This document shows positions 7,595-25,283 of a DNA stretch of 64,000 nucleotides, piece by piece. The translations under genes and the position numbers were made by a program. Numbering within the stretch: position 1 is the first letter of the stretch; every line of letters starts with the position of its first letter. Location: sequence record KJ019086.1; one strand, given 5' to 3'. Under the pieces are notes generated by a model. The model saw only the letters and a list, made by a program, of their open reading frames with translations, was not told the origin of the DNA and ran no database searches.

Positions 7595-9555
7595 TGGCAC
7601 AACCACAAATTGCTGCAAACAAAACTAAAGCTCTGAGAATTGGTCAGAGGTTGATGGTTGGTGCCAAGAGTTTTGGTAAAGGTGTCAGGAATAGTGTTGA
7701 TACTTCACAACAGGTTATCACTCAGAGTGCTCGTAAGATCAAATCAGATCAGAAAAGAATCAACACAGAGAATAGGAAGCAGCAAAGGTTTGAGGAAGCA
7801 GTACGGGAAGAAACAGAGAGAAGACAGAAATCCCTAACAAAGGGTGCATATGGTGTTGGTAGTGCTGCCAAGAAGCTAACCGAGAAGGTTGTGGTGGATC
7901 CAATGAAAGCTATTTGGAACATTATTGCTGCTTGGGCTATTAAGAATCTCCCAACTATTGTTGATGAAGTTAGAAAATTTGTAAAGAAAGTGAGGATTGT
8001 AATAGCTGCTATTAATAACGCGTTTAGAGCAACTGGTAACCTATTTAAGGGGTGGTTATCATATGGACAGGCTTGGCTGACAAATATGGTTACCTTTGAC
8101 TGGGGTGACTCCACAGGTAGGTTGGAAGACGCACAGGCTGAAATAGATAATAGTTATGATGAATTAGATGCAAGTTGGAATACTATCTACAATGTATGGG
8201 GTAAGGAGGAAGAAGAGTTAGACAAAATGCTAACTTGGTTGGATAGTGGTAAGACTGTTAAACAGGCTACTGATGCTATTACACAAGGTATTCCATTGCC
8301 ACAGACACCTGCTTTTGGTGATGGTAGTAGGGAAGGTGGCGGAGGTTATGGTGGATCAGGCATCCAAATGAGTGCTGATGAGCAACAACTTACAGAGTCA
8401 TTGATTGCCGGTGAGGAGGGGGTAAGAACCAAAGCATATCAGGATAGTGAAGGTATTTGGACAATTGGTTATGGTCAGACTAGAATTAATGGTCGTGCAG
8501 TAAGACCAGGTGATACAATAACAAAAGCACAAGCATTGAGTGGTTTTAGAGGTGCTCTTGCAGAACACCAACAAAGGGCAATCAATCAACTTGGTGAGGA
8601 GAGATGGTCACAACTGGACGCAAGATCTAGAGCAGTTCTCACCTCTATAACATACAACTATGGTAGTATTCCTGGTAGAGTTCTACCTGCTGCTAAAACT
8701 GGTAATGCTGAAGACATTGCTGTAGCGATGAATAGTTTGTATGGAGATAATAGAGGAGTTCTAAAAGGTAGAAGACAGAGAGAGCAATCTATTCTTAGGG
8801 GCGGTACTTCTTCCTACTTAGATAAAGACTTTATGGCTGGTGGTCAATTTGCAGGCTCTGGTACTGGTCCTCTAGTCATGGGTGGTGGAAATGAATCTAG
8901 TTCAGGTTCAATATCTTCATCTGGAGGCACAACCAACACGACTGCAATGAAGAAAGGTGATATGGTTGGTGGTTTTAGTGTTAGTTCTGCATTTGGACGT
9001 AGAGCTGCACCTACTGCTGGTGCTAGTTCTAATCATGGGGGTCTTGATATTGCTACTCCACAAGGAACATACTTAGCTTTTGATGTTGATGTTGAGATTA
9101 TGTTCGCTGGTTCAGCTGGTGGATATGGATATGTCATTGATGCTTGGTCGGCATCATTAGGAATTCAGTTCCGTTGTGCTCACATGTCAGTATTAATGTG
9201 TAACCCAGGACAGAAAGTTCGTGCTGGAACTGCTGTTGGTAGAACTGGTGGTGCAGTGGGAAGTCGTGGAGCTGGTACATCCACTGGACCTCATCTTCAC
9301 TTTGAAGTGAGTAATCAGAAGGGTTCTGCTAACTATGGTGGTTCAAATAGTGCTAGTATGTTAGCCAGATACGCAAAACACTTAATCCTTAGCTCATCTA
9401 AACCACAACCACAGTCACTCAGACCAGCTACAGTGAGTTCTTCCTCACAGCAAACCGCTAATCAACTTAACTCTTCTGCTTCCTCCAGAAGAACTAATGG
9501 TAGGAGAACTGATCAAAAAATAATACTAATCAAGGAAAATACTATTATTAAATAA
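7594..9555 (+). CDS. Virion muralytic protein: GH24 lysozyme + M23 peptidase domains
   Basis: EEGVRTKAYQDSEGIWTIGYG gives the E-x8-D-x5-T triad of T4-type lysozymes; HGGLD (HxxxD) and GPHLHFEV (HxH) of M23. Confidence 0.85.
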   Translation: MAQPQIAANKTKALRIGQRLMVGAKSFGKGVRNSVDTSQQVITQSARKIKSDQKRINTENRKQQRFEEAVREETERRQKSLTKGAYGVGSAAKKLTEKVVVDPMKAIWNIIAAWAIKNLPTIVDEVRKFVKKVRIVIAAINNAFRATGNLFKGWLSYGQAWLTNMVTFDWGDSTGRLEDAQAEIDNSYDELDASWNTIYNVWGKEEEELDKMLTWLDSGKTVKQATDAITQGIPLPQTPAFGDGSREGGGGYGGSGIQMSADEQQLTESLIAGEEGVRTKAYQDSEGIWTIGYGQTRINGRAVRPGDTITKAQALSGFRGALAEHQQRAINQLGEERWSQLDARSRAVLTSITYNYGSIPGRVLPAAKTGNAEDIAVAMNSLYGDNRGVLKGRRQREQSILRGGTSSYLDKDFMAGGQFAGSGTGPLVMGGGNESSSGSISSSGGTTNTTAMKKGDMVGGFSVSSAFGRRAAPTAGASSNHGGLDIATPQGTYLAFDVDVEIMFAGSAGGYGYVIDAWSASLGIQFRCAHMSVLMCNPGQKVRAGTAVGRTGGAVGSRGAGTSTGPHLHFEVSNQKGSANYGGSNSASMLARYAKHLILSSSKPQPQSLRPATVSSSSQQTANQLNSSASSRRTNGRRTDQKIILIKENTIIK

Positions 9556-9557
9556 CC

Positions 9558-9565
9558 TATAAATA
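9558..9565 (+). promoter_or_regulatory. Late promoter
   Basis: TATAAATA upstream of 9590. Confidence 0.7.
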
Positions 9566-9589
9566 CCTAATATAGGTGTGTAAGGTGTA

Positions 9590-10939
9590 ATGTCTAAGAG
9601 ACCAGCAATATATAGAAAAGTCTCAGTAGTTACTAAAGATGGTTTTAGGGCAGATATTCGTCTTGCTTGTGTGTCAATTGACTTCTTTCAGGATATAATG
9701 TCACCTGCACTAACGGCAAAGATTATTATTGCCAATACTATGACTAATATTGAGGATGATCAGGGTGCCACCGTATCTCTCTATGAAGGATTGAAGTTGC
9801 GCGGTGGTGAGGCAGTTGAGATTGAAATAGAAGCAAATAGTGAAGATAACTTACCTATTGAATTTAATAATCCTGCGTTGTATGTCAGTGGTGTATCTGA
9901 AATGAGTAGGAAGTCACTCAAACAGTTCTTCACTATCAACTTATACACCAAGGAGGCATATGATAATGAGACTAAGTTCCTAGAGAAAGCATATCCAAAA
10001 GAATCTAGAGTGAGTGATCATGTTAGTACTATAGTTTCTGAGTCTTTTCCTACAACTACTCTCAATAAGGTAGATACTACCTCAAATACTTATGGTTTTT
10101 TGGGTAATCAACTCAAGCCATTCTATGCTCTTATCAGGTTAGCAAGTAAAGCAGTTCCTGAAGGTGCTGGTAGTGGTGGAAATAGTGCGACAGCTGGTTT
10201 CTTCTTCTACCAATCTATGAGTGGATTTAACTTTAGATCCATTGATAAAATGATGGGGGAAGAACCAAAGGCACAATATACTTACACTGAAGTTAGTTCA
10301 TCTGAAGAGACTGGAGATTTTGAAGCTACCCCAGAACTACCTTCTAATAGGTTTAAGATTGAGAAGTTTCACGTCACTAAAAACCAGAACCTCTTGAAGA
10401 ACCTTAGTCAAGGTGTATACGCCTCTGCTAAGAAGTTCTTTAACCCTGTAGATTTTACAGTCACCCCACCACAAGAGTTCTTCAGTGGTGATAAGTACAT
10501 CAGGGGTGTTAGTAACTTGGGTCAGGCTTTTGATCCACAAGACATCAGCTTAGTGGGTGATTCTTTGAGTTTCACTAATGTACCATCTAGGATTCTTAAT
10601 GAGGTATATGATATTGGAACTGTTGAGAAAGAAGTGAATCAGGAACCCACACAAAACCCTGATGAGTTTCTAGCACAGAGAAAGATGAGGTATAATACAT
10701 TATTCACTCAAGATGTTTATATTCAAGTTAGTGTTAATACTAATCTTGAGGCTGGTGATCTTGTTAAATGTCTATTCCCTAAAACTCAAGAGTGTCCTAC
10801 TGATGATATAGATCAGGATCAGTTAAGTGGTCTATATATGATTAAGGAAATTAGACATCACTTTGATACTAGGGGTTCTTATTCATCTATGAGACTACTT
10901 CGTGACACCTTTGGTTTATATGGAGTGAATAACAAATGA
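9590..10939 (+). CDS. Baseplate hub protein (gp27/gpD-like)
   Basis: LASKAVP, AGFFFYQ-GFNFRSID, LEAGD...SGLYMIKEIRH C-terminus; directly before gp5. Confidence 0.6.
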   Translation: MSKRPAIYRKVSVVTKDGFRADIRLACVSIDFFQDIMSPALTAKIIIANTMTNIEDDQGATVSLYEGLKLRGGEAVEIEIEANSEDNLPIEFNNPALYVSGVSEMSRKSLKQFFTINLYTKEAYDNETKFLEKAYPKESRVSDHVSTIVSESFPTTTLNKVDTTSNTYGFLGNQLKPFYALIRLASKAVPEGAGSGGNSATAGFFFYQSMSGFNFRSIDKMMGEEPKAQYTYTEVSSSEETGDFEATPELPSNRFKIEKFHVTKNQNLLKNLSQGVYASAKKFFNPVDFTVTPPQEFFSGDKYIRGVSNLGQAFDPQDISLVGDSLSFTNVPSRILNEVYDIGTVEKEVNQEPTQNPDEFLAQRKMRYNTLFTQDVYIQVSVNTNLEAGDLVKCLFPKTQECPTDDIDQDQLSGLYMIKEIRHHFDTRGSYSSMRLLRDTFGLYGVNNK

Positions 10940-12993
10940 CAATTAAACTTGGTAGAATCGCTGACATTGAACCACAAAAGGAACAGGTCGATGGTGGTGG
11001 ATGGGCGTGGAGATATAAAGTACGCATCCTAGACAAACACTCACAGGATAAGAATGTTCTTCCTGATGAGGATCTACCGTGGGCACAGGTTATTATGCCT
11101 GTCACGGCAGGTTCTGGTGCTGCTAACTATGCAGTATCGCCTATGATTAACCAGGGTGACACTGTAAGAATTGAGTATTATGATCTAGACGAACAACAAC
11201 CAGTTATTACAGGTATCCTCCCTAGAACTAAAAAGGTTTCTACAGGTCCAGTGGGTGAGAATAACGGATATCTACCACACACTGGTTATACAGAGAGGAG
11301 AGAGCCAAACTCCAAACAGGTAAAGGATGAGTCACATGAATCTAATAAGGAGAGTCAAGTATCTACAAGGTCAGATAGGTTCTCCAGTGTTTTTGGTGAT
11401 ACAACAGTTCTAGCAGATAGTTGTGATCCCAATGCCTACAAAATTAACGCAGTAACATCTGCTATCACTAATCTATTCAACCAGATTAATAACTTTGCTA
11501 ATCAAGCGTCATACATTGAGACTATCACACAAGCAACTATTGATAGAATTCATGCCATTGTAAATCCATATGTGGGACAAATCTTCAATGGATTGTTTGA
11601 GGGATTGGTTCCTATTCTCAACCAGGGTTTGGCTGCATTATACAAGAAAATATTCGCTCAAGTATTGGCTGCCACTAATGGTAATGTAATTGCTGCCACT
11701 GCTGCCGCAGAAGCAGCACTCATCGCACTTATGCCAGCTATTATGGCACTACAGGAAGCCATTCAGATGTTGGCATCTCTAACAGTTGAGCAAATGTTAG
11801 ACGAGATTGATTCCCTAGTTAGGGATGCAGTTGATAATAATGATGACTTCTCCCGTTGTGCGGCAGAAGACTTCGCTTCTGCTATGATCAACGATATTGT
11901 TGATAAGACTGATAATGGTATGCAACCACTACTAAACGCAGTCACTATTATTCTAGCACTCGCAAGTGTTGGTAGTGGATTCACCGCTGGTACTGCTATT
12001 CGTAGTACTTTGGATGTCCTAAAAGATCTCACATCTGCTCTACTTGCACCAGGTCAAAGTGGTGGTGGTAATTGTGGTGGAATCACAAAGGAATATGCAT
12101 TTGGTATAGGTCCTGTGAAGGATGTGGGTGATGTTATGGATGCTCTTCTAGAGTCAGCAAACATAGCAAAGTCACTAGTAGATGAGGCAAAGAAAACACA
12201 ACAGGAAGTTGATGGTCTCCTAGACACATTTGGTGACTTCCCATTTATGAGTTCCACTACAAATATTATATCTAATCTAGACAAGTGTTCCACACTAGAA
12301 CCTACTACTTGTTTTGGTCCTGAAGTTGTATTATTTGGTGGTAGAGGTGATGGTGCTGAAGCTCGTGCTATTATTGGCAACACAAAATCAAAATCAGATG
12401 ATAGAATTGCTGGTAATGCGCAGGGTGGCATTGTTGCTATTGAAGTTCTAGATGGTGGTTCAGGTTATGAGTATCCACCATATGTGGATATTAGAGATAA
12501 CTGTGGTCTAGGTATTGGTGGTGTTGGTAGAGCAGTCCTAAAGGGTGATAAGGTAGATAAAATCTATATGGTGAATATTGGTGAAGACTATCCTGGAGAT
12601 GCACCTGGGGACTTTATTGTTGATACTATTATCATCGTTGATGGTGGCATAGGATATGAACCAGGTATTACTCCTGGAGGTGAATATGAAGTTATTACTG
12701 ACCCAGATGGAACAGTAATTGATATTATTCCTACCAACCCAGTACCAATTCCTGGTCCTCCAACTATAAATATACCAGATGTATCTCCACCTATTCCACC
12801 AGGAGGTAATATCATTGATGGTAATGTTGTAGATGAGAATGGTAAAGTAATAGCACCCGCTAAGATTGGTACTGGTTTAGTGTTCTATCCAGTTATCAAA
12901 CAGATACCCCCACTTAAGGACCTCCTTGAGGGTAATGTTCCTGGATTTACACCGGAAGAAGTTGTATTCATTATTGATTGTATTCAGAGTTAG
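10936..12993 (+). CDS. gp5: gp5-like baseplate hub/spike protein, N-terminal OB-fold part
   Basis: RYKVRILDKH, DEDLPWAQV, GDTVRIEYYDLDEQQPVITGIL of gp5/VgrG OB fold; no lysozyme motif seen. Confidence 0.75.
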   Translation: MTIKLGRIADIEPQKEQVDGGGWAWRYKVRILDKHSQDKNVLPDEDLPWAQVIMPVTAGSGAANYAVSPMINQGDTVRIEYYDLDEQQPVITGILPRTKKVSTGPVGENNGYLPHTGYTERREPNSKQVKDESHESNKESQVSTRSDRFSSVFGDTTVLADSCDPNAYKINAVTSAITNLFNQINNFANQASYIETITQATIDRIHAIVNPYVGQIFNGLFEGLVPILNQGLAALYKKIFAQVLAATNGNVIAATAAAEAALIALMPAIMALQEAIQMLASLTVEQMLDEIDSLVRDAVDNNDDFSRCAAEDFASAMINDIVDKTDNGMQPLLNAVTIILALASVGSGFTAGTAIRSTLDVLKDLTSALLAPGQSGGGNCGGITKEYAFGIGPVKDVGDVMDALLESANIAKSLVDEAKKTQQEVDGLLDTFGDFPFMSSTTNIISNLDKCSTLEPTTCFGPEVVLFGGRGDGAEARAIIGNTKSKSDDRIAGNAQGGIVAIEVLDGGSGYEYPPYVDIRDNCGLGIGGVGRAVLKGDKVDKIYMVNIGEDYPGDAPGDFIVDTIIIVDGGIGYEPGITPGGEYEVITDPDGTVIDIIPTNPVPIPGPPTINIPDVSPPIPPGGNIIDGNVVDENGKVIAPAKIGTGLVFYPVIKQIPPLKDLLEGNVPGFTPEEVVFIIDCIQS

Positions 12994-12995
12994 AC

Positions 12996-13697
12996 ATGGC
13001 AGAACAAAATTGGGAAAGAAGAATACTCCAGAGTTTTGGTGCTAACTTTCGACTAGATGTTAGTAACCCACAGAAGACTGTTGGTGGTGAAGATGTATAT
13101 AACTTCTACTCTGTTACAGATGAGGAGAAAGTATGTCTAATGGGACAACAACAGGATGGTCTCTGGCGCCTCTACAATGATGATAAGGTAGAGATTGTAG
13201 GTGGTGCCAAAGTTGTTGAGGATGGTGTATGTGTAACTATTGTTGGTAAGAACGGTGATGTAGTTATTAACGCTGACAACAATGGGAGGGTTAGAATCCG
13301 TGGGCAGAATATCAACCTCCAGGCAGATGAGGATGTTAATATCACTGCGGGTAGGAATGTTAATATCAAATCTGGTTCTGGTAGAACTCTCCTTGCGGGC
13401 AATACCCTGGAGAAAGACGCACTCAAAGGTAATCTATTAGACCCAGAGAAACAATGGGCATGGAGAGTATTTGAAGGAACTGGACTACCTGCTGGTATGT
13501 TCCCACAACTCATGTCACCCTTCAGTGGTATTACAGACCTAGCGGGATCTATTGTTGGTGGAGTTGGGTTCGGTGATGCAATCAGTGGGGCTGTGAGTAG
13601 TGCAGTCAGTGGGGCAGTCAGTGGTGCTGTTGGTGGTGTCGCCGGTGGTGTCGCCGGTGATATTGCTGGTGACGCAATTGGTGGTATTATACCCTGA
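12996..13697 (+). CDS. gp5 C-terminal-like beta-helix spike protein
   Basis: Start moved to ATG 12996; repeated beta strands (NINLQADEDVNITAGRNVNIKSG) and Gly/Ala 4-residue repeats at the C-terminus. Confidence 0.55.
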   Translation: MAEQNWERRILQSFGANFRLDVSNPQKTVGGEDVYNFYSVTDEEKVCLMGQQQDGLWRLYNDDKVEIVGGAKVVEDGVCVTIVGKNGDVVINADNNGRVRIRGQNINLQADEDVNITAGRNVNIKSGSGRTLLAGNTLEKDALKGNLLDPEKQWAWRVFEGTGLPAGMFPQLMSPFSGITDLAGSIVGGVGFGDAISGAVSSAVSGAVSGAVGGVAGGVAGDIAGDAIGGIIP

Positions 13698-13703
13698 TAA
13701 ATA
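13697..13703 (+). promoter_or_regulatory. Late promoter of the collagen-fibre operon
   Basis: ATAAATA upstream of 13736. Confidence 0.6.
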
Positions 13704-13735: not shown

Positions 13736-16525
13736 ATGGCAAGCATTCAATTCCCAGCAAATCCGAAAGTTGGTGATACTTACTACGACGTAGATACAAA
13801 TATAACTTACACCTGGGAGGGTGAATACTGGTTTGCAACAGGACCAGGCACAGGTATTGGTGCCACTGGAGCAACTGGAGCACAAGGAAATCAAGGTTCT
13901 AGTGGTGAAAAGGGTGAGCCAGGAACTCGCGGAATTAAAGGAGATACTGGATCTACTGGTTCTACCGGTCCCACAGGTCCTGGTGGTTTTATTGGATTAA
14001 CAGGTGCAACTGGTCCTCAAGGTTCTCCCGGTGGTGCTACCGGTGCTACAGGTAATATTGGTCCTTTAGGAACTACTGGTGCAACTGGTCCTGATGGTGC
14101 TAGTGGTGCTACAGGTATTCAGGGTCCTATTGGTACTCCAGGTGGTGCAACTGGCGCTACTGGTTTAGCTGGTCCTCCAGGAAATGTTGGTGCTACTGGT
14201 CCTCTCGGTCCTAATGGTACTCCAGGTGGTGCTACTGGTCCTCTTGGTCCTGTTGGTTCTACTGGAGCCACTGGTGCTGGTGCTACTGGCTCTGATGGTG
14301 CTACTGGTTCTACAGGTATTCAGGGACTACAAGGTTCCCCAGGTGGTGCAACTGGTGCTACTGGTATTGATGGTTTACTAGGTCCTATTGGTGCCACAGG
14401 TACTACAGGAGCTACCGGTGTTGATGGTCCTATTGGTGCCACAGGTACTACAGGTGCCACAGGTGAGACAGGTGATACAGGTTCAACCGGTGCTGCTGGT
14501 CCTACCGGTATTCCTGGAGCCACTGGTTTCACAGGTCCTGAAGGTGCTACGGGTTCCAAAGGTGATGAAGGTTCTACAGGTAGTACAGGTCCTCAAGGTT
14601 CTCCAGGTGGTGCCACTGGTGCTACTGGTGTTGATGGTCCTGTAGGTTCTACAGGTGCCACAGCTGCTACTGGTGCCACTGGTCCTGACGGTCCTACCGG
14701 TCCCGCAGGTCCTACAGGTTTATTAGGTGCCACTGGTGCTACTGGTGATGATGGTTCTACCGGAGCCACTGGTGCTACTGGTTTTGGTGCTACAGGTGCT
14801 GATGGTGCTACTGGTTCTACAGGTTCTACAGGTCCTGATGGTCCTCTTGGTTCTACTGGTGCCACTGGTATTGCAGGTGGTGTGAGTCATGTATGGTCAC
14901 CAGATGTTTCTATCCTAACTGCCAACAACTCTTTCCTATTCACCCACGATGTAGACGAAGATATTAAGATCCTAAAGATCTCCAAGTTTAGTTCAACATT
15001 CACCAATGAGGAGGCACTACTTAATAGTTTTGCAATCGGTGATTCACTTAGACTAACATCAGGTCCAGCAACATTCCAATATACTGTTAGAGCCAATGGT
15101 GGACTCACAGTATCATCTGGTGTTGACGTGTTTATGTTACTCGTCAGTGATGGTTTCTTAGCATCTGGTAGTGGAACACTCAATGGTTCAACAGTTGTTC
15201 TTCAACGTCCCACATCATCCACCTTCGCTACATTTAACTTCGGTGTATCCACTATCAACTGGCCTACTACTGATGGTGATGTAACTATTGACTATCCATT
15301 CCTAGTAAACAATGGTCCTAGGTATGTTGCATTCAATCAGAAGGATCTACTAGGTAGGGATGATGAGCAGTTCTTCTTTGAACCTTTAGTATCTACAGAC
15401 CTAAACTCATTCCAGTTCCAGGTTAAGACTACTAACTTCTTCAAATCAGAAATTGAAGGTGGTTACTACTATAGTGATATTGATGCCTATGTGTATCTAA
15501 CTGATATCACCGAACTATATTCAGATCCAAGTAATCCAGTAACCAGTGTGGGTTCACCTTGGAATGTTCAGGTTGTAGGTATTGCCTCCGCCATTCCTGG
15601 TGTTGCTGGTTCTCCAGGTGGTGCAACCGGTGCTACTGGTCCTGCTGGTCCTCCAAGTGGTGCAACTGGTGCTACAGGTGATCTTGGTCCTATTGGTCCC
15701 GGTGGTCCTACTGGTCCCGTTGGTGTTAACGGATCCCCAGGTTCACCCGGTGGTGCAACTGGTGCCACTGGTGCTGATGGTCCTGAAGGTGCTACTGGTT
15801 CTACAGGTGCAACAGGTGCATTCGTTACTGGTAGTAATCTTGTAGCAGGTATTATCACAGCCACCACATTCGATGGTGATGCTACATCATCTGATAAGAT
15901 TAAGACTAATCGGTCCAGCAGTGCGGCTGTTAACTATCTAACTTTCGTTTCTGATGATAACACTGGTGGTGCCGTTAGTGAAACCCTCAAGACAAACTTG
16001 AATGTAAGTTTCATTCCTTCTTCTGGTGATTTTATCGCTAGTAGGATTACAGCAAGTAACAACTTCTACCTGGGTGGTACTGAGGTCAATTCTTCAGCAT
16101 CTGAACTAAATGTGTTGGTTGGTGTTACTGACTTCTTAGATGAAGATAATATGGCATCCGATAGTCCTACGGCTATCCCATCACAACAATCAGTTAAGAG
16201 GTATGTTGACGCTAACGCTTTCTCTGGTATTACTACAGTTAGTATCCTAGTGGGCGCTGGTTCTAGTGATGTATACTTCGCAAGTTCTATTGTTCCAACT
16301 ACTAATGAGTCCATTGACTTGGGTAGTATTGACTATAAGTTCAGAGACCTCTACCTATCAGACACAACCATATATACTAACACTGGTGAACTTAGTGTAG
16401 GTTTGAATACCACAGCACCAACCGCAAAGGTTGTTCTTGGTCCAGCACTACAAACAATTGTTCAACAGTCCACTGATTTTGATGACTTTAAGATCAGAAT
16501 CGCAGCACAAAGTTGGGGTGGCTAA
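13736..16525 (+). CDS. Collagen-like tail fibre protein
   Basis: Two long interrupted Gly-X-Y tracts (GAT, GPx, GST), N-terminal FPANPKVGD...WEGEYW domain, C-terminal [11 protein letters not shown] fibre motif. Confidence 0.85.
13850..14880 (+). repeat. Collagen Gly-X-Y repeat tract 1 (approximate limits)
   Basis: Many GGTGCTACTGGT / GGTGCAACTGGT units; recurring [11 protein letters not shown]; second tract at about 15598-15820. Confidence 0.85.
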
Positions 16526-16528
16526 TTA

Positions 16529-16951
16529 ATGGGTTATCGTAATGAGAAAGCTCCCCACACTGGGAGCTTATTGGTAGGAACTGGGGGTAGAGTTACTTTT
16601 ACTGGTAGATCCTCTGGTGATATGAATAAGATTGCCACTTGGGGTGAAGAAGGGGGACAGATAGAATCTACCAACTTTTCTGATCTTCTGGCACTATACG
16701 AGGAGTCTTTCGCGGTATCTATTGTCAGTGAAGATGAACCTTCGCTAAGACCTTTGGGTGAAGACCTAAAACTAGGAGATCTGTGGTATAGTACGTCAGA
16801 ACGGAGACAGTATGTTTTTACAAATGGAATTGATGACCTTCCAGTCACCTTTAGAGGCTGGACACCTGTTATTTCAGGACTTAGTACGATTGCTAACGGA
16901 TTTATTGTATCCAATGGTATCATTGTTGGTGTGGCAGCAACAACTCCATAA
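16529..16951 (+). CDS. Fibre-associated hypothetical protein
   Basis: 140 aa directly after collagen gene; GDLWYST motif seen in phage fibre proteins. Confidence 0.55.
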   Translation: MGYRNEKAPHTGSLLVGTGGRVTFTGRSSGDMNKIATWGEEGGQIESTNFSDLLALYEESFAVSIVSEDEPSLRPLGEDLKLGDLWYSTSERRQYVFTNGIDDLPVTFRGWTPVISGLSTIANGFIVSNGIIVGVAATTP

Positions 16952-16986
16952 TATGGTATAATGGTGGGTAAGTATCTTATACCCAC

Positions 16987-17550
16987 ATGAGCCACGAGCA
17001 CGAAGATTACGAATTTGAAAAAGATTATTGGGGTGATTGTTGTAATACCTTCGATGAGGATCAGAAACACTATGTGTATGCCCGTCTAATGGGATTAGAA
17101 CAGGCACACTATAGTTTTCGTTTGCCTGGTATTTCTGTAATTGATATTGGTGGCGGTCCTTCTTCGATGTTATTGAAGACTGAAGGACTTACTAGAGGTT
17201 TGGTTGTAGATCCTATTTCATATCCCCAATGGACTAAAGATAGGTATTCAGTAAAGAATATTGAAGTCCATGTAGATGTTGGTGAGAATGTAACAGAGAC
17301 AGGATATGATGAGGTGTGGATATACAATTGTATGCAACACGCTATTGATCCAGAGAAGATTATTGCTAACGCAAGGGAAGCAGCACCAGTCCTAAGATTG
17401 TTTGAGTGGATTGATATTCCAGCACACGATGGTCACCCCCACGAACTAACAGAGCAATCACTAAATAAGTGGATTGGTCAAACCGGTAGTGTTACATCTC
17501 TAGCAGAGAGTGGTTGCTATGGTAAAGCATATTATGGAGTATTTGAGTGA
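16987..17550 (+). CDS. Class I SAM-dependent methyltransferase
   Basis: VIDIGGGP motif I, VVDP motif II, YDEVWIYNCMQH. Confidence 0.75.
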   Translation: MSHEHEDYEFEKDYWGDCCNTFDEDQKHYVYARLMGLEQAHYSFRLPGISVIDIGGGPSSMLLKTEGLTRGLVVDPISYPQWTKDRYSVKNIEVHVDVGENVTETGYDEVWIYNCMQHAIDPEKIIANAREAAPVLRLFEWIDIPAHDGHPHELTEQSLNKWIGQTGSVTSLAESGCYGKAYYGVFE

Positions 17551-18626
17551 GATTTCATCTATTAGGTTTGCCCCATACAGTAACCCACCCAGACTATACT
17601 GCTTGTGCATACACCATGAAGGTGTTGAAGTTTGGTAAGATGATGAAGGCGCGTGGTCATACAATTATTCACTATGGTCACGAAGATAGTAAGTTGGTAT
17701 GTGATGAGCATGTTTCAGTAACTACCAATGCAGACCTAGAGAAAGCATACGGCAGTTATGATTGGAGAAAGAACTTCTTCAAGTTCAATACATCGGATCA
17801 CGCATATCAGACATTCTATAAGAATGCTATTCGTGAAGTAGGTAAGCGTAAACAGAAGAATGATTTCATCCTACCTTTCTGGGGTAGTGGTACTCGTCCT
17901 GTATGTGATGCTCACCCAGAAATGATTTGTGTGGAACCCGGTATTGGTTATGCTGGTGGTCACTGGTCTCAGTGGAAAGTGTTTGAGAGTTACGCTATTC
18001 TCCATGCATACTGTAATCTAACATCAGTAGGAACCTGCAAACAGAGTTGGTATGATGTTGTTATCCCTAATTACTTTGACTTAGATGATTTCACCTACGC
18101 CCCAGAAACTAAGGAAGACTATTTTCTATTCTTGGGGCGTGTATATAGCGGTAAGGGCATTGATATTGCTGTACAGGTTACTGAACACATAGGTGCTAAA
18201 CTAAAAGTAGCAGGACAGAACCCAGAGAACAGAACTTTCCCACCACATGTGGAGTTTGTTGGATATGCTGATATTGAGATGAGACGGGAGTTGATGTCTA
18301 AAGCAAAGGCATCCTTTGTTGCATCACAATACCTAGAACCTTTCGGTGGTGTTCAGGTGGAGAACTTATTATCAGGAACTCCTACTATCACTACAGACTG
18401 GGGTGCTTTCGTTGAGAACAACCCAGACGGACTAACTGGTTTCCGTTGTCGTACATTCGGTGACTTTGTTGATGCCGCTAATAACATTGACCAGATATCT
18501 CCTGCAGTATGTCGCACTTTCGGTGAGCAGTTTGCACTGGAGAATATTGCTCCCAAGTACGAGAAGTATTTCCAGGATGTTCTCAATGTATATACTGGAA
18601 AGGGATGGTATGAACTAAATGAATGA
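17547..18626 (+). CDS. GT-B fold (GT4-like) glycosyltransferase
   Basis: FLGRV-GKG, EPFGGVQVENLLSGTPTITTDWGAFVE (E-x7-E-type signature). Confidence 0.88.
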   Translation: MRFHLLGLPHTVTHPDYTACAYTMKVLKFGKMMKARGHTIIHYGHEDSKLVCDEHVSVTTNADLEKAYGSYDWRKNFFKFNTSDHAYQTFYKNAIREVGKRKQKNDFILPFWGSGTRPVCDAHPEMICVEPGIGYAGGHWSQWKVFESYAILHAYCNLTSVGTCKQSWYDVVIPNYFDLDDFTYAPETKEDYFLFLGRVYSGKGIDIAVQVTEHIGAKLKVAGQNPENRTFPPHVEFVGYADIEMRRELMSKAKASFVASQYLEPFGGVQVENLLSGTPTITTDWGAFVENNPDGLTGFRCRTFGDFVDAANNIDQISPAVCRTFGEQFALENIAPKYEKYFQDVLNVYTGKGWYELNE

Positions 18627-19212
18627 ACTAATACAAACGATTGATTGTATTACTCAAACTGAAATCAATACAATCAAAGAATATGTCCAAGATGATTGGT
18701 GGCAACCTACTACTATCTTTGGAATGTCTGGTTGTGAAATTAATACAGATGTTAGATCCAATGATAGAATATCTCTCCATGATGATAGTATTGCCGCTCA
18801 GATTATTCATACGGGTATGAATAAGGCACTCCTTGAGTATAGAACACAACTCTATAATGTTGATCCATACTTCAACAATTACCCAGTTCCAGGATCATAT
18901 AGGACTAATTGTCATAGGGAAGGTATTCAACTCCTTAGATATAAAGAAGGACAACACTACAACTGGCATCACGATACTGCAGCAGATCGTGCAGTAAATG
19001 AGTATCACAGAACGATCTCTATTGTGTTATACTTATCAGATGACTTTGAGGGTGGTAGAACAGTATTCCCCCACAGAGCATACAAACCAAAAGCAGGACA
19101 GGCACTAATTTTTCCCTCTAACTGGTGTTTCCCACATAAGTGTGAACCAATCACAAAGGGTGTGAAGTTAGCATCTGTTTCCTGGTACTATTCACATTAT
19201 AACTATGACTGA
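18619..19212 (+). CDS. 2OG-Fe(II) oxygenase, prolyl-4-hydroxylase-like
   Basis: HHD...ISIVLYLSDDFEGGRTVF...FPH...K: HxD...H facial triad. Confidence 0.88.
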   Translation: MNELIQTIDCITQTEINTIKEYVQDDWWQPTTIFGMSGCEINTDVRSNDRISLHDDSIAAQIIHTGMNKALLEYRTQLYNVDPYFNNYPVPGSYRTNCHREGIQLLRYKEGQHYNWHHDTAADRAVNEYHRTISIVLYLSDDFEGGRTVFPHRAYKPKAGQALIFPSNWCFPHKCEPITKGVKLASVSWYYSHYNYD

Positions 19213-19381
19213 AAATAAGACTACACCACAAACAGTAGAAGAAGCAACTCATGCTGCTTTCACTGGAAAGATGAACATGATCAAGTGTGCAGAACACTGT
19301 GGGATGACGATAAAACAGTTTAAATTAACCTTCCGTGAGTATCTAAAATACCACCCAATAGACGAAAATTATCCTATCTAA
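19205..19381 (+). CDS. Small hypothetical protein (58 aa, not in ORF track)
   Basis: MTENKTTPQTVEEATHAAFTGKMNMIKCAEHCGMTIKQFKLTFREYLKYHPIDENYPI; HTH-like pattern. Confidence 0.6.
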   Translation: MTENKTTPQTVEEATHAAFTGKMNMIKCAEHCGMTIKQFKLTFREYLKYHPIDENYPI

Positions 19382-19384
19382 ATA
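19378..19384 (+). promoter_or_regulatory. Late promoter
   Basis: CTAAATA upstream of the 1955-aa gene. Confidence 0.55.
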
Positions 19385-19415: not shown

Positions 19416-22400
19416 TTGCCCCTTAATAAGTTAGAGAATTTCATTAAGAATACGGATGGACGTACTCTGTATGTTAATCCAAACGATCTTAATGCTACTG
19501 ATAGTATTACAAACCAAGGCACTTCCCTTACAGAACCCTTCAGAACTATTCAGAGGGCGTTAATTGAGAGTGCGCGTTTCTCATATGTGCGTGGTGATGA
19601 TAATGATCTCATCGAGAGAACCACCATCATGGTGTATCCCGGTGAGCATCCTATCGATAACCGTCCTGGTTTCGGTATTAAGACAGTAGGTAATAGTCCG
19701 GTAGCGGTAACTCCTTCAGGTGAGTTGATTGATCCGTTCCAAGCATTTAACCTGACTGATGCTAGTAACTTTGATATTGAGTCTAGTAATAACGTTCTCT
19801 ATAGATTTAACAGTATCTACGGTGGTGTTGTTGTTCCCCGTGGTACTTCTATCGTGGGTATGGACCTACGTAAGACAAAGATTCGTCCGATATATGTTCC
19901 CAACCCCACTGATGATTCAGTAGATTACTCAGCGATCTTCCGTATCACAGGTACTTGCTACTTCTGGCAGTTCACCATCTTTGATGGTAACGAGAATGGT
20001 GTAGTATTCACTGACCCAAGAGATTTCTCTGAGAATAACCAGTCCAGACCCACTTTCTCACACCACAAACTAACAGCATTTGAATACGCTGATGGTGTTA
20101 ACCCAGCGGTAGAATCAGGGTTTGAACTTACTGACCTTGCTATGTATTATAGTAAGTTGTCTAACGCATATAATGAAGCATCTGGTCGTCCTATTGATGA
20201 GAAGTATCCATCAGATCCTGGTGGTTTTTCACCACAACGTCCTGAGTTTGAGATTGTTGGTGCATTCGCAACTGACCCAATCAATATCACTCGTTTAATC
20301 TCTGGTGATGGTTTTGTCCCTGATGCTGTCATCACAGTAGATACACAGGTCCCACATGAACTAAACACTGGAACACCAATTAAGATTCGTGGTGTTGCCA
20401 TCAGTGACTATAATATCTCTACAAAAGTATCTGCAGTTCTTAGTCCTACTAGGTTTACGTATAACCTATCATTCGTAAGACCTAACCTACCAGCAGAACC
20501 TTCAGTATCCTCTGCAACTGTAACCGTTGAGACTGATACTGTAACAGGTGCTTCACCATACATCTTTAACTGTTCGATGAGATCAGTTTGGGGTATCAAT
20601 GGAATGCACGCCGATGGTGCCAAAGCAACTGGATTCCGTTCCATGGTTGTTGCTCAGTTCACCGCGATCTCCCTTCAAAAAGATGATAGATCCTTCGTTA
20701 CTTATAATAAACAGGCACGTAGATACGATGGTATCAACGTCAATAAGACTGTAAGGGGTGCTGAACTATCTGCACAGTCATCTTCTACTAACTCAGCAAC
20801 TGTATACCACCTAGATCCTGACGCTATCTATCGTCCTGACTGGGGTACAACTCACATCAAGATGAGTAATGATGCAGTCATTCAGATTGTGTCTGTATTC
20901 GCTATTGGTTTCAATCAACACTTTGCTTCTATTGGTGGAGCTGATGCATCAATCACAAACTCTAACTCCAACTTTGGTCAGTTTGCACTGAAAGCTGATG
21001 GATTCAAGAATGATGCTTTCCTCAAAGATGATAAAGGTTTCCTAACATCATTTGTTTCTCCTAAGAGTGCGTATAACCCAGAAACTGATGATATTGAGAT
21101 CATTGACTGGATCAACATTGACTTTGATCTAACTCGTAGTATTGCCTTTGCTAATCAACTCTATCTAACTGGTTATACTAACGCGGAAGATAAACCACCA
21201 GTAGTTAATCAGGGTTTCCGAATTGGTGCCAACTACAAAGAGAGTCTCATTCAGAGAACAACAGTTGGTGCTGGTGCAGATGTAACCTCATCAGTAAGAA
21301 TGTGTGATAATATTCTCGGTCCTGGTAACAATCAAGCAACTGGTAGTAGTGTCGCTAGAAAGGTATATCAAGTTCTAGCTGGACCTATCAACAATACCCT
21401 CTCACTGGGTGTTCATGGACTACTTAATGGTGAGAGTGTCAGAGTATTCTCATCAACAGGTGACCTACCTGAGAACCTAGAAAGAGGTGCCCTATACTAC
21501 GCAAATGTGGTTGATGGTGAGAATATTCGTATTGCTACTTCCGAGTCTAATGCACTCAACAACATCTTCCTCAACATCTATGGTGGTGTTGAACTTCGTG
21601 TTGAGTCTAGAGTTAATGATAAGGAAGCAGGTGAAAGAGGTCATCCCGTTCAGTATGACTACACTAACCAGAACTGGTTTGTTCATACTGATGCCAATAG
21701 TGATATCTATCAGTATATTGTAGCCAACCCAACCTCTACAGATGGTATTGACTTTGTATCCATATTCAAGAGATTTGGTGATAACAGGGCACTAGAAGAC
21801 AAACTATATCGCCTCAGGTATGTTATTCCTAAGGAGTCAAGGAACGCAAAACCACCTACCCCTGGTTATGTTCTACAAGCATCAGCAACAACAGGTGCTA
21901 GGAATAACGATGACTTTATCCTACAGGATATTGGTATCAATGACTATGAATATAACAGAAACCCACGTTATATTGTAAGTTGTACTGTTATTGCTAATGA
22001 AGTTGAGGTTCGTAGTGAGATTCCACACAACTTGAATGTTGGTGATAAGATTAAAATAGTGAATGTTGCCAGTACAAATAACACTGGCGCATCACAAATC
22101 AAAGGTTTCAATGGTGAGTTCCTAGTTACTAGAGTTATCAACTCTCGTGAGTTTAGGTATGATATTACTGATGTAAATGGTTTTAGTAGAAATCCTGGTA
22201 CCTTCACCAACAACATCAATGAAAGAAACATTCTTCTACCTCGTTATGAGAGAAAGGATCTACAGAGTAATGTATTCGTATATCGTATTGAAACTATCAC
22301 TGATTTCCTAGAAGGTGAGAGGGATGGTATCTACCACTTATTCCTTCTTAATGGTTCTAACCCAGTAACAGAGACATTCACTGATATCCAATACAATCAA

Positions 22401-25283
22401 CCTGTGGAAGATTTATATCCACAGATGGATCCTGATAACCTTATTCAGAACCCCCCTGCAACCACAACGTTTGCTAAGAGGGCACCCCTAGGTGATGTTA
22501 CTATTGATGAACAACAGAACTCCATTACTAAAGAGTCTGTTGATAAAATATACAAGACACTTAATGTTGGTATCATTGAGACTGCTACTGATGGCACTGT
22601 TGGTGCTGGTGGAACACGTACAACCACACTAACATTCCAAAGAGAGCACGAGTTCAACTCTGTGTATAGTTACACCACACTAGTTGGTGGTGGTGGATAT
22701 ACTGATGGTACTTTCTATGATGTTAAACTACTCAGTGAGTTTGGCACAGTATGGGGAGGTGCTTCTGCTGTTGTTACTGTTACTGCTGGTACAGTTACCG
22801 CAGTTACTATCATGGATCCTGGTTCAGGTTATTCTGCAGGTCAGACACTATTCATCGATGGAACTACAATTGGTGGTGGTACTAACGCTACTATTAGTAT
22901 TACTCAGGCAGACTTAGAGGATAACAAGCATAGTATCCTACAGATTTCTGGTGGTGCTTTGTATAACCCAGATTCATATGTAGTGATGACCAGTGTTGAG
23001 GATCAGTCTTCAGTTGGTGTTGCTAGAACTTCTGGAAGTCCTGCTATTATTCCTGGTATGTACGCATATCCAGCAGATAGTGGAACAGGTATTTCTTCAA
23101 CTACATATAACTCCGATACAGGTTTAACAACACTAGTATCTACAGGTAGTGCTGGTTTTGGTCTTCAGAGGGGTAACACTTTCGTTGTATTCAGTAGTAA
23201 CTATAGCTATCTCGGTAAGTTCTTTGTATCTAATGTTCCAACTCCAGATACATTGGAGTTCTACTCATACCGAGATCTAGGAACTGTATCTATTGTAGGT
23301 AAGACAGGTTTAGATGTAAATGATGCTAACACTGGTTCCTTAGGTGAGAACGTGGGTGTTAGAGCTACACCACTATATGATAACGGTGTATTCTATCTTG
23401 AACAGTCTTCAGGTACTGGAACACAACTAACAGTTAGGGCTGAAGATGGTGGTGTGGCTGGTAATGTAGACTCTAAGATGTACCTAGGAAGATACTTCCA
23501 AATGGGTTCTGAGATTATCAGAGTTGCTAGTAAGAACTTTGATGGAGCCAATAACAATATCGTAACTGTTATCCGTGGTGCTCTTGGTACCGTTGTTAGC
23601 AACCTTCCCATTAATACTAAGGTGAAGGCAATCAGACCTTCCGCACTAGAACTTAGAAGACCTTCTATTCTACGTGCCTCAGGTCACACCTTTGAATATC
23701 TTGGTTATGGTCCTGGTAACTATTCCACTTCATTACCACAACTACAGGTTAAGCAACTCCCAGATGATGAAATTTACCTAGTACAGGCTCAGGAACTATC
23801 CTGTGGTCAGGTTGTTTATACTGGTATGAGTGATAATGGTGACTTCTATATCGGTAATACCAAGTATTCCGCAACCTCAGGAACACAATCAACCTTTGAT
23901 GTTCCCATCCCAACTGTTGCTGGTCAACCAGGTAGTTCTAATAATGTTGTGTTTGATGAAGTTATCATCAACCGTCGTCTATTCGTATCTGGTGGTGAAA
24001 CTAATGAGGTTCAGTCACAGTTTGATGGTCCTGTTAAGTTTACCCAGTCTGTTACTATCCAGAACAATCTTTTCGTAACTGGTACAACTCAACTCAATAG
24101 AATTGAGATCACCAGTACAGAGAACGCAACCAGTTCTGCTAATGGTGGAGCACTAACTATCAGAGGTGGTGCTGCTATTGGTAAAGACTTCTATGTTGGT
24201 GGTGAAATGTACACCAACGCATATCAAATAGAAGATACAAGTGCAGTTCTTGAAATTGGTACTAACCAGTCATCTAAGGATATCTCTGTTGGTGGTTCAA
24301 CTGATACAGATAGAGTTGTTTTTAATACAACTAAACTAGCAACAGGTGAAGGTGCTGAAGAGGTAGTTAACGCAGACGCTGGTGTTGTTGTTGAGGGTGG
24401 ATTAGTTGTTCGTGATGTTATTATCGCGAAAGAGTTTAGAGGTGCTGGAACTGGTGGTGGTCCTGGTACTATCCTACTCTGGGGTGGTTCTACTAGTGCT
24501 CTCCCTGACAGATATCTACTCTGCAACGGAGCTACTCTCAATAAAAACACATATAACAAACTATTCGAAGCCATTGGTTATATCCATGGTGGTAGTGGTA
24601 ATAGTTTTAAGTTACCAGATTTGAGAAATAGGTTTATCCCTGGTGCTGGTAGTTCTTATGCGGTAGCTGCAAAAGGTGGGGATGATTCAGTTGTACTAAC
24701 TGAAACGCAGATGCCACGCCACACGCACTCAACTTCAGCAGTCAACGCACCACATACTCACCCAGTATCGTTTACTAGTGGAGCGGCAAATGCACCACAT
24801 AAACACCCAGCTGGCACAGGTGGCGGTGGAAATCATAACCACCCATCAGGTGGCACAGGTGGTGGTGGTAATCACAATCACCCATCAGGTGGCTCTAACA
24901 ATACAGGCAACCATGGACACCCGTATAGTGCTCCGGGGCAATCCAAAACTGATGTTGCTAATTCTAACGAGAAGAATGTAACTAGCAACGTCAATGCCTC
25001 AGGTGCAGGAACCGGTGGTGGTGGAGCACACTCCCACTCTGTTTCAGTTAACAGTACATCCTCAGCTCATAATCACCCAGTAAGTGTCAACTCTGGATCT
25101 TCAGCTCATAATCACCCTGTTAGTGTTAATTCAGCTAATGCACCACATTCCCACCCAATTAGTGGTAATGCAGGTTCTGCAAACGCACCTCACGTTCACC
25201 CAATTGGTAATACTGGTGGTACTGCTTCCTTTGACAATAGACCCAAATACTACGCTCTCTGCTATATTATCCAATCAGAGTGA
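19416..25283 (+). CDS. Large tail fibre / baseplate-associated protein with tail-collar domain and HxH needle
   Basis: Cyanophage-type N-terminus MPLNKLENFIKN; collar motif GTILLWGG...YLLCNG...FKLPDLRNRF; 11 HxH motifs; TTG start (in-frame TGA at 19401). Confidence 0.8.
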   Translation: MPLNKLENFIKNTDGRTLYVNPNDLNATDSITNQGTSLTEPFRTIQRALIESARFSYVRGDDNDLIERTTIMVYPGEHPIDNRPGFGIKTVGNSPVAVTPSGELIDPFQAFNLTDASNFDIESSNNVLYRFNSIYGGVVVPRGTSIVGMDLRKTKIRPIYVPNPTDDSVDYSAIFRITGTCYFWQFTIFDGNENGVVFTDPRDFSENNQSRPTFSHHKLTAFEYADGVNPAVESGFELTDLAMYYSKLSNAYNEASGRPIDEKYPSDPGGFSPQRPEFEIVGAFATDPINITRLISGDGFVPDAVITVDTQVPHELNTGTPIKIRGVAISDYNISTKVSAVLSPTRFTYNLSFVRPNLPAEPSVSSATVTVETDTVTGASPYIFNCSMRSVWGINGMHADGAKATGFRSMVVAQFTAISLQKDDRSFVTYNKQARRYDGINVNKTVRGAELSAQSSSTNSATVYHLDPDAIYRPDWGTTHIKMSNDAVIQIVSVFAIGFNQHFASIGGADASITNSNSNFGQFALKADGFKNDAFLKDDKGFLTSFVSPKSAYNPETDDIEIIDWINIDFDLTRSIAFANQLYLTGYTNAEDKPPVVNQGFRIGANYKESLIQRTTVGAGADVTSSVRMCDNILGPGNNQATGSSVARKVYQVLAGPINNTLSLGVHGLLNGESVRVFSSTGDLPENLERGALYYANVVDGENIRIATSESNALNNIFLNIYGGVELRVESRVNDKEAGERGHPVQYDYTNQNWFVHTDANSDIYQYIVANPTSTDGIDFVSIFKRFGDNRALEDKLYRLRYVIPKESRNAKPPTPGYVLQASATTGARNNDDFILQDIGINDYEYNRNPRYIVSCTVIANEVEVRSEIPHNLNVGDKIKIVNVASTNNTGASQIKGFNGEFLVTRVINSREFRYDITDVNGFSRNPGTFTNNINERNILLPRYERKDLQSNVFVYRIETITDFLEGERDGIYHLFLLNGSNPVTETFTDIQYNQPVEDLYPQMDPDNLIQNPPATTTFAKRAPLGDVTIDEQQNSITKESVDKIYKTLNVGIIETATDGTVGAGGTRTTTLTFQREHEFNSVYSYTTLVGGGGYTDGTFYDVKLLSEFGTVWGGASAVVTVTAGTVTAVTIMDPGSGYSAGQTLFIDGTTIGGGTNATISITQADLEDNKHSILQISGGALYNPDSYVVMTSVEDQSSVGVARTSGSPAIIPGMYAYPADSGTGISSTTYNSDTGLTTLVSTGSAGFGLQRGNTFVVFSSNYSYLGKFFVSNVPTPDTLEFYSYRDLGTVSIVGKTGLDVNDANTGSLGENVGVRATPLYDNGVFYLEQSSGTGTQLTVRAEDGGVAGNVDSKMYLGRYFQMGSEIIRVASKNFDGANNNIVTVIRGALGTVVSNLPINTKVKAIRPSALELRRPSILRASGHTFEYLGYGPGNYSTSLPQLQVKQLPDDEIYLVQAQELSCGQVVYTGMSDNGDFYIGNTKYSATSGTQSTFDVPIPTVAGQPGSSNNVVFDEVIINRRLFVSGGETNEVQSQFDGPVKFTQSVTIQNNLFVTGTTQLNRIEITSTENATSSANGGALTIRGGAAIGKDFYVGGEMYTNAYQIEDTSAVLEIGTNQSSKDISVGGSTDTDRVVFNTTKLATGEGAEEVVNADAGVVVEGGLVVRDVIIAKEFRGAGTGGGPGTILLWGGSTSALPDRYLLCNGATLNKNTYNKLFEAIGYIHGGSGNSFKLPDLRNRFIPGAGSSYAVAAKGGDDSVVLTETQMPRHTHSTSAVNAPHTHPVSFTSGAANAPHKHPAGTGGGGNHNHPSGGTGGGGNHNHPSGGSNNTGNHGHPYSAPGQSKTDVANSNEKNVTSNVNASGAGTGGGGAHSHSVSVNSTSSAHNHPVSVNSGSSAHNHPVSVNSANAPHSHPISGNAGSANAPHVHPIGNTGGTASFDNRPKYYALCYIIQSE
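24813..24890 (+). repeat. 39-bp imperfect tandem repeat x2 (GTGGGGNHNHPSG)
   Basis: Units 24813-24851 and 24852-24890 differ only at synonymous sites. Confidence 0.8.

Follow-up and report, generated by a model that had tools for sequence, protein, structure and literature searches.

Analysis of a 64,000-nucleotide (nt) stretch of DNA (bases 1–64000 of KJ019086.1, hereafter the window) from Synechococcus phage ACG-2014f isolate Syn7803US17, a T4-like cyanomyovirus (Kyanoviridae, Atlauavirus), showed a collagen-like fibre gene closely followed by genes for a predicted methyltransferase, a glycosyltransferase (GT) and a 2-oxoglutarate (2OG)-Fe(II) oxygenase at positions 13736–19212. These genes, all on the + strand, belong to the section of the structural module that encodes baseplate and fibre proteins. 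The order starts with a gp5-like hub (10936–12993) and a 233-amino-acid (aa) protein and continues with the collagen-like fibre protein (929 aa, 13736–16525), a small open reading frame (ORF; 140 aa, 16529–16951), the methyltransferase (187 aa, 16987–17550), the GT (359 aa with a GTG start, 17547–18626), the oxygenase (197 aa, 18619–19212), a small conserved ORF (58 aa, 19205–19381; phrog_1920) and a giant fibre protein (1955 aa, 19416–25283; “putative short tail fiber” in GenBank), 3′ of which lies a further fibre-like gene. Coordinates and strand of the five ORFs from collagen to oxygenase, as given in an initial annotation made from the sequence, agreed with GenBank, where the labels are “collagen triple helix repeat protein”, “hypothetical protein”, “group 1 glycosyl transferase” and “PiuC”. 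The last three of these genes overlap one another, as had been noted, by 4 nt (methyltransferase and GT) and 8 nt (GT and oxygenase), and the stop of the oxygenase additionally overlaps the 58-aa ORF by 8 nt. The region is best explained as the fibre part of a late structural operon in which a glycan-decoration cassette is embedded.

The collagen-like protein matched the Pfam Collagen family (PF01391) with 139.2 bits (cut-off 27.2, E = 3.4e-41) and also matched PHROG tail-fibre families. It comprises a head (aa 1–41, 13736–13858), a first collagen region (aa 42–383, 13859–14884), a globular middle (aa 384–621, 14885–15598), a second collagen region (aa 622–696, 15599–15823) and a C-terminal domain (aa 697–929, 15824–16522). 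In total, 134 Gly-X-Y triplets were present in 13 runs, the longest of 29 triplets, and this repeat content is far above chance. The Y position was occupied by Thr in 58 of the 134 triplets, by Pro in 12 and by Lys in 3, and GAT, GST and GPT triplets numbered 32, 13 and 5, respectively, so that the initial description of a collagen dominated by Gly-X-Thr was borne out.

The GT matched the Pfam family Glycos_transf_1 (PF00534) with 47.6 bits (cut-off 26.4) and was also above the cut-off for Glyco_trans_1_4 (PF13692). Residues E264 and E272, forming an E-x7-E motif, were invariant among three phage GT orthologues. The earlier assignment to the GT-B class was thereby confirmed, and the enzyme can be described as GT4-type. 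The nearest solved structures were 7fg9, a glucosylsucrose synthase (PMC9909042), and a tetrahydrobiopterin glucosyltransferase; in both cases the alignment covered the C-terminal donor-binding domain only, so that the sequence does not reveal the acceptor.

Gene neighbourhoods connected the GT with collagen. Among phages in GenBank the GT was present in three lineages only (ACG-2014f, S-CAM7 and S-CBWM1), each time beside a Thr-rich collagen fibre. The GT of S-CAM7 is 86% identical and lies in the order collagen, collagen, GT, second GT-like gene, oxygenase, without the methyltransferase. In S-CBWM1, a myovirus outside the Kyanoviridae, a GT of 31% identity is located directly 3′ of a 329-aa collagen “tail fiber” with a Thr fraction of 0.43 at Y. 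More than 470 GT relatives were found in IMG/VR, and the best 80 loci, 71–100% identical to the query GT and at least 66% identical pairwise, were used and fell into 40 clusters when grouped at 90% identity. Of these clusters, 17 contained a collagen ORF with 40 or more triplets, always on the GT strand (within 3.5 kb in 15 and within 150 nt in 5), as did 9 of the 13 clusters having at least 8 kb on both sides. The relative arrangement varied, with at least six gene orders, for example collagen then GT, GT then two collagens, a 2489-aa collagen four genes upstream, and heme oxygenase, GT, gp9/10-like gene, small ORF, collagen. Since the collagens near the GT also carried at least four unrelated N-terminal heads, the link of the GT is to the collagen part itself and not to one inherited fibre gene.

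The composition of these collagens was distinctive as well. With clusters counted as independent, the median fraction of Thr at Y was 0.53 near a GT (17 clusters) vs. 0.14 in GT-less cyanomyovirus loci (23 clusters; Mann-Whitney p = 2e-7). The median share of G-[AST]-T triplets was 0.46 in 41 distinct ORFs near a GT vs. 0.02 in 71 distinct ORFs of GT-less cyanomyovirus loci (p = 3e-18). Collagen next to the GT is thus specifically rich in G-(A/S/T)-T. Co-occurrence with collagen, which had been expected of the three enzyme genes together, was accordingly found for the GT (three of three GenBank lineages; 17/40 and 9/13 IMG/VR clusters), but the trio does not form a unit: the oxygenase adjoined the GT in only 2 of the 40 clusters, solely in ACG-2014f- and S-CAM7-like phages.

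Two further observations concern the surroundings of the GT. Close relatives were 66–76% identical despite unrelated neighbouring genes, which suggests that the family is under strong constraint and frequently transferred among aquatic phages. In four loci (L010, L047, L048 at 9456–9995, and L061), which include a 352-kb contig, a heme oxygenase gene (PF01126) lies directly 5′ of the GT, and a gp9/10-like baseplate gene and then a collagen fibre come after it.

The product of 16987–17550 had been called an S-adenosylmethionine (SAM) methyltransferase, which was right, although this is not detectable with curated libraries: no match was obtained in Pfam, NCBIfam, or PDB sequence or profile searches, and the protein does not belong to any curated sequence family. 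The PDB searches returned only spurious matches to repeat proteins and a marginal match to motif I. The family itself is tight, with at least 692 homologues, none of which matched Pfam. Residues D53, I54, G55, G57, P58 and D75 were invariant among 30 homologues and correspond to the Gly-rich motif I and the acidic residue of strand 2. The motif-I stretch aligned to its counterpart in a bona fide Methyltransf_23 domain, and hhalign against a fused Methyltransf domain gave only 58% probability over 32 columns. The AlphaFold model was of high quality, with a predicted local distance difference test score (pLDDT) of 91 and a predicted template modelling score (pTM) of 0.88. The top 50 Foldseek matches of this model in the PDB were all class I SAM methyltransferases, with template modelling (TM) scores of 0.47–0.65 and a best E of 1.4e-7. 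In all, 410 matches were found at E ≤ 0.001, and these included sugar and natural-product O-methyltransferases. Judged from the model, the protein has the seven-stranded, Rossmann-like fold of class I SAM-dependent methyltransferases.

Additional support came from fusions of methyltransferase domains to the GT family. A search of 1.8 billion representatives gave 883 GT-family clusters at 50% identity (E ≤ 1e-30), and 116 of the 150 best representatives were multidomain. In a Pfam scan of 60 representatives, the fusion partners were methyltransferases of four kinds, GT2, GT25 and DXD glycosyltransferases, sulfotransferases and one PF13640 oxygenase, the last in P0159, the single GT-2OG fusion seen among the scanned representatives. 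The methyltransferase domains fused to the family comprised Methyltransf_23/11/25/31, FkbM and Methyltransf_24. Of the 150 best representatives, 12 combined the GT with the methyltransferase type of the window itself, located on either side. Among the 40 clusters of close relatives, 14 had a Methyltransf_23/11-type domain fused at the GT C-terminus and 10 had an adjacent gene for a window-type methyltransferase, giving 24 of 40 with a fused or adjacent methyltransferase; an FkbM-type gene was present in two and a second GT in eight. The GT and the methyltransferase thus constitute a real unit. Because the company kept by the GT (methyltransferases and further GTs) is typical of glycan assembly and tailoring, we infer that the methyltransferase acts as a sugar O-methyltransferase rather than a protein methyltransferase. 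Methylation of the fibre protein itself is therefore less likely than methylation of the sugar, since this GT family repeatedly occurs with several types of methyltransferase and with additional GTs, either in fusions or as neighbouring genes.

The oxygenase matched Pfam 2OG-FeII_Oxy_3 (PF13640) with 66.7 bits (cut-off 27), and its best sequence match in the PDB was the prolyl 4-hydroxylase (P4H) of Bacillus anthracis (E = 2.5e-8), followed by prolyl 4-hydroxylases of Chlamydomonas and PBCV-1. The iron triad (H117, D119 and H173) and K183, the basic residue binding 2-oxoglutarate, were invariant among 35 homologues. With the structural model (pLDDT 92.5), the top 48 Foldseek matches were all protein prolyl hydroxylases, with PBCV-1 vCPH first (E = 2.6e-11), at identities of 15–23%. 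The top fold matches included the PBCV-1 collagen P4H, Chlamydomonas P4H, PHD2, a Dictyostelium PHD, and the P4Hs of Pseudomonas and B. anthracis. The earlier description as a prolyl-hydroxylase-like 2OG-Fe(II) oxygenase was upheld by PF13640 and by the neighbours in sequence and fold, and the predicted double-stranded beta-helix fold and the iron triad place the enzyme in the protein prolyl 4-hydroxylase type.

Full-length orthologues of the oxygenase were present in ACG-2014f, S-CAM7 (58% identity), P-SSM2 (47%) and many marine contigs. Its genomic context differed from that of the GT. A homologue of the giant fibre gene was located directly downstream in 37 of 44 oxygenase clusters, and in P-SSM2 also. 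A collagen ORF of at least 30 triplets was present in 25 of the 44 clusters, in most cases immediately 5′ of the oxygenase gene (17 of the 24 clusters whose upstream flank was 5 kb or longer), and the GT in only 5 of 44. In P-SSM2 the oxygenase lies 3′ of five collagen genes that are Pro-rich, four of them strongly so (Pro fraction 0.59–0.72 at X and 0.18–0.29 at Y), and no GT was found in the fibre stretch of this phage. A Pro fraction at Y of at least 0.04 was reached by 15 of the 25 oxygenase-linked collagens vs. 3 of 15 others (p = 0.011). By its gene context the oxygenase is a fixture of the fibre slot in these cyanomyoviruses; collagen is a plausible, less well supported target, and possible alternatives are the giant fibre and host proteins, for example EF-Tu. 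The giant fibre homologue in one marine locus (L164) carries a phage Collar domain.

Some features of other loci and phages are recorded here alongside the oxygenase. The P-SSM2 collagen genes (L084, 5277–13118) sit between the gp5 hub and the oxygenase orthologue. The 58-aa ORF is translationally coupled to the oxygenase and lies between it and the giant fibre gene in ACG-2014f, in S-CAM7 (L003, 11640–11765) and in L164. A different 2OG oxygenase, annotated as prolyl 3,4-dihydroxylase, is listed in section 7 of PMC12801897 in the virion proteome of cyanophage S-SCSM2R, which is likewise a cyanomyovirus.

Expression of the genes from one late promoter at 13697 had been proposed initially, and this was upheld in part. 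The late-promoter-like motif GATAAATA at 13696–13703 (+ strand), 32 nt before the collagen start codon, matches the cyanomyovirus late consensus NATAAATA (PMC2984593) and is a putative promoter. However, the exact T4 late octamer was absent at 13697 and showed no enrichment across the window, and a second, host-type element, the extended −10-like sequence TGGTATAAT, was found at 16954–16962 (+ strand), 25 nt before the methyltransferase start codon, as another putative promoter. Within the first 40 kb, six structural genes on the + strand are preceded by ATAAATA at a distance of 12–39 nt, and CTAAATA, a possible late-promoter variant, lies at 19378–19384 (+ strand), 38 nt before the giant fibre gene; CTAAATA also precedes the collagen and giant fibre genes in S-CAM7. 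The motif TGNTATAAT was present in 13 copies in the window vs. 3.9 expected, a number reached by no shuffle. Positions on the + strand include 16954, 27492, 29424, 34163, 35181, 38938, 54625 and 57668, and the + strand copies other than that at 16954 mostly lie 22–33 nt before the starts of small genes downstream of the fibre operon. TGNTATAAT is thus a candidate early or host-type promoter class of ACG-2014f. An extended −10 element before the first enzyme gene is kept in S-CAM7 and in marine loci (L005, L006, L007, L020, L164 and L165), with the GT rather than the methyltransferase sometimes being the first enzyme gene in these relatives. The enzyme genes may be transcribed by read-through from the late promoter and probably also own a host-type promoter.

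A simple sigma-70 scan and a terminator scan gave no excess, and no convincing terminator was found between the collagen gene and 27.4 kb. The fibre block terminates at a strong G+C-rich hairpin with a T-run (27465–27486). This hairpin overlaps a near-consensus host-type promoter (TTGGCA, 17 nt, TATAAT, with TG) in the region 27465–27500, where the late fibre operon ends and a long block of small genes begins. An Rfam scan of 12–28 kb gave no match, and the main text of the literature searched held nothing on the expression timing of the P-SSM2 oxygenase orthologue.

Based on these results, we propose that the GT4 enzyme would move a sugar from a nucleotide sugar to the hydroxyl group of Y-position Thr in the G-(A/S/T)-T triplets of the collagen fibre, in the cytoplasm and either ahead of fibre assembly or in the course of it. 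The class I SAM methyltransferase would O-methylate the transferred sugar and not the protein. The P4H-like oxygenase would hydroxylate prolyl residues of a fibre, either at the 12 X-Pro-Gly sites of the collagen or in the giant fibre just downstream. The expected effect is that the proline-poor collagen triple helix would be stabilised and shielded on the virion surface. As judged from the genes, O-glycosylation of the fibre with methylated sugars is the best-supported reading, and the three-part model of GT, methyltransferase and P4H is given somewhat less than an even chance. Of the earlier proposal that the phage modifies its own fibre with all three enzymes, the GT-collagen link and the GT-methyltransferase unit speak in favour, but the oxygenase is not part of a trio unit and methylation of the protein is less likely than that of the sugar. 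A wider proposal is more doubtful, although still conceivable: that a horizontally mobile and widespread GT-methyltransferase module of aquatic phages puts methylated O-glycans on the Thr residues of proline-poor G-(A/S/T)-T collagen, joined in marine cyanomyoviruses by a viral prolyl 4-hydroxylase. It would be the first such pathway of collagen maturation to be described in a bacteriophage, with the glycan replacing hydroxyproline as the stabiliser of the triple helix.

Several observations weigh against modification of the collagen fibre and are considered here together with the alternatives on which they bear. No collagen ORF was seen in the available sequence of 23 of the 40 GT clusters (4 of the 13 with full flanks), and some GT relatives adjoin replication, terminase or small early-type genes. 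The association statistics, by counting 90%-identity clusters as independent, ignore shared ancestry, and within the sole fibre-head family shared by loci with and without a GT the contrast was weaker (median Thr fraction at Y of 0.38, n = 6, vs. 0.21, n = 40; p = 0.002). The conserved host-type promoter element before the cassette suggests that its expression is separate from, and perhaps earlier than, that of the fibre, and both the modification of the fibre and the presence of the collagen protein in the virion are predictions from the genes.

The promoter element would suit early action on the host, and together with the GT relatives located away from structural genes it agrees with a role in host surface remodelling, in which the GT and the methyltransferase would add a methylated sugar to the host lipopolysaccharide (LPS) or another envelope glycan during infection, for instance to prevent superinfection or change grazing. 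The position among fibre genes would then reflect the plasticity of host-recognition clusters, and the oxygenase would be an unrelated auxiliary enzyme. Such a role is the standing view for GTs that lie in host-recognition clusters of cyano- and pelagimyophages, and likewise for the P-SSM2 LPS genes (PMC7029224, PMC2984593, PMC12801897). GT4 enzymes commonly serve envelope glycan synthesis, and weak NCBIfam matches to such enzymes were obtained. However, by Pfam, PHROG and GenBank annotation the cassette is not accompanied by genes for a flippase, a polymerase, sugar nucleotides or a lipid carrier. Host surface remodelling also leaves unexplained the G-(A/S/T)-T composition common to GT-adjacent collagens with unrelated heads and six gene orders, as well as the GT behind a collagen fibre in the unrelated S-CBWM1, and we consider it unlikely.

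Other points against concern the oxygenase: its tie to the giant fibre gene (37/44 clusters) is closer than that to collagen (25/44), and 10 of the 25 oxygenase-linked collagens are almost without Pro at Y. The giant fibre gene being the most constant neighbour of the oxygenase is consistent with the glycosylation of another virion protein, which might be the giant fibre itself or a baseplate, capsid or tail protein. In relatives that lack collagen, the GT gene adjoins those of virion structural proteins, of a gp9/10-like baseplate protein, or of the terminase and portal, and a precedent exists in mycobacteriophages (Freeman 2023, as cited in PMC12801897). Such a target would not account for the G-(A/S/T)-T composition of collagens in loci with a GT, and the giant fibre is not notably rich in Thr or Pro (8.9% T and 4.8% P); we therefore regard it as distinctly unlikely.

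Finally, the nearest solved GTs use small molecules (sucrose and tetrahydrobiopterin), with only the donor-binding half aligning, and according to PDB entry titles the bacterial P4Hs among the structural neighbours of the oxygenase modify EF-Tu. These points bear on targets outside the virion. The enzymes could serve in DNA hypermodification (oxidation, glycosylation and methylation of bases), could act on small molecules (a pteridine or a glucosylated solute, for example) or could, in the case of the oxygenase, hydroxylate prolyl residues of a host protein, with EF-Tu as one candidate. The solved GTs closest to the phage enzyme come from cyanobacteria and glucosylate small molecules, EF-Tu is a known substrate of bacterial P4Hs by the same entry titles, and a 7fg9-like GT-B enzyme takes part in DNA hypermodification of Rhizobium phage RL38J1 (PMC13326640). 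On the other side, the top 48 structural neighbours of the oxygenase were protein prolyl hydroxylases and not of the TET/JBP or AlkB types, the methyltransferase had no match to any DNA methyltransferase family in Pfam, NCBIfam or Foldseek, and the adjacent genes were fibre genes, with no nucleotide-metabolism genes among them. A review found no evidence of DNA glycosylation in cyanomyoviruses (PMC2984593), and the association with collagen would be left unexplained. Non-virion targets as a group thus appear improbable, and DNA hypermodification was rejected as the principal explanation in view of the P4H-like oxygenase, the lack of a DNA methyltransferase family match and the fibre-gene neighbours.

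Modification of a collagen-like fibre by neighbouring enzymes has counterparts elsewhere. A cytoplasmic pathway is known, that of Dictyostelium Skp1, in which a Pro residue of a protein is first hydroxylated and the hydroxyl group so formed is then glycosylated. PBCV-1 vCPH, Chlamydomonas Cr-P4H-1 and the Dictyostelium Skp1 pathway provided the best structural matches of the phage oxygenase, at identities of only 15–23%; unlike these viral and algal P4Hs, the phage enzyme has a non-collagen giant fibre as its most constant gene neighbour. In Clostridioides difficile, SgtA, encoded next to bclA3, puts O-linked N-acetylglucosamine on Thr of collagen-repeat peptides (PMC7157674). BclA3/SgtA and BclA of B. 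anthracis resemble the phage locus in combining a Gly-X-Thr collagen-like filament protein with an adjoining GT gene. However, SgtA has a GT-A fold with tetratricopeptide repeats (TPR; PMC7157674), whereas the phage GT is of the GT-B/GT4 type and had no GT-A or TPR match, so that the two are analogous and not homologous; homology to SgtA was ruled out by the different GT fold. BclA3 and BclA are located on the spore surface, with the glycan shown for SgtA, while the phage counterpart is a tail fibre predicted from its genes.

Mimivirus L230 hydroxylates and glucosylates viral collagen (PMC9614988). Like the phage, mimivirus encodes collagen-like proteins together with a 2OG oxygenase and a GT, and in the GT relative P0159 these two activities are likewise fused. 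L230 combines a PLOD-like lysyl hydroxylase with a GLT25D1-like GT and acts on Lys at Y, whereas the phage enzymes are prolyl-4-hydroxylase-like and GT4, and Lys occupied Y in 3 of 134 triplets. Lysyl hydroxylation of the L230 type was therefore rejected, as the neighbours of the oxygenase were prolyl or PiuC-type hydroxylases with no lysyl hydroxylase listed, and Lys at Y was almost absent. In the 2023 Cell Host Microbe work of Freeman and colleagues, the targets of virion glycosylation are reportedly the C-terminal tails of capsid and tail-tube proteins in siphoviruses of actinobacteria. We know of no collagen-like fibres, dedicated methyltransferase partner or prolyl hydroxylase in the mycobacteriophage system. 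There, phage GTs decorate the virion proteins of the phage itself, as described by the citing source (Freeman 2023, cited in PMC12801897). The SgtA/BclA3, L230 and mycobacteriophage systems are regarded as analogues, and the enzymes of the first two are not homologous to those of ACG-2014f as far as tested.

Glycosylation of collagen Thr, viral collagen-modifying enzymes and phage virion glycosylation are already known separately, and in the literature searched no paper connected these collagen, GT, methyltransferase and oxygenase genes. Tail fibres determine the cells to which a phage can attach, and cyanophages control the most abundant marine phototrophs. If fibre glycosylation is correct, fibre chemistry, stability and recognition could not be deduced from the protein sequence alone, and the many GTs of marine myovirus host-recognition clusters, which are now routinely taken for modifiers of the host surface (PMC7029224, PMC2984593), would have to be reinterpreted. 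Phage-encoded virion glycosylation, documented so far for mycobacteriophages, would then reach aquatic phages; the GT family comprises 883 clusters. The G-(A/S/T)-T signature may serve as a simple sequence marker for candidate glycosylated viral collagens. Irrespective of its substrate, a fold and a functional partner can now be assigned to a methyltransferase family of at least 692 proteins outside curated libraries.

The 140-aa ORF (16529–16951, + strand) between the collagen and methyltransferase genes had been described as a small fibre-associated ORF. Its first 56 residues showed 41% identity (E = 9e-12) to the N-terminus of S-CAM7 gp015, a second collagen fibre of 636 aa; the ORF itself carries no collagen part and no collagen repeats. 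It matched phrog_3608 over its full length and had N-terminal matches to PHROG families of 944–1044 aa. In L164 and L165 a 157-aa ORF occupies its position. The head and middle of the collagen-like protein itself resemble S-CAM7 gp014 (69% and 38% identity, respectively), whereas its C-terminal domain begins with a stretch that aligns to gp015. S-CAM7 has two collagen genes (L003, 4078–8961), while ACG-2014f has one collagen gene plus the 140-aa ORF, which retains only the gp015 head (13736–16951). From these alignments, the arrangement in ACG-2014f looks like the product of a rearrangement through the collagen repeats.

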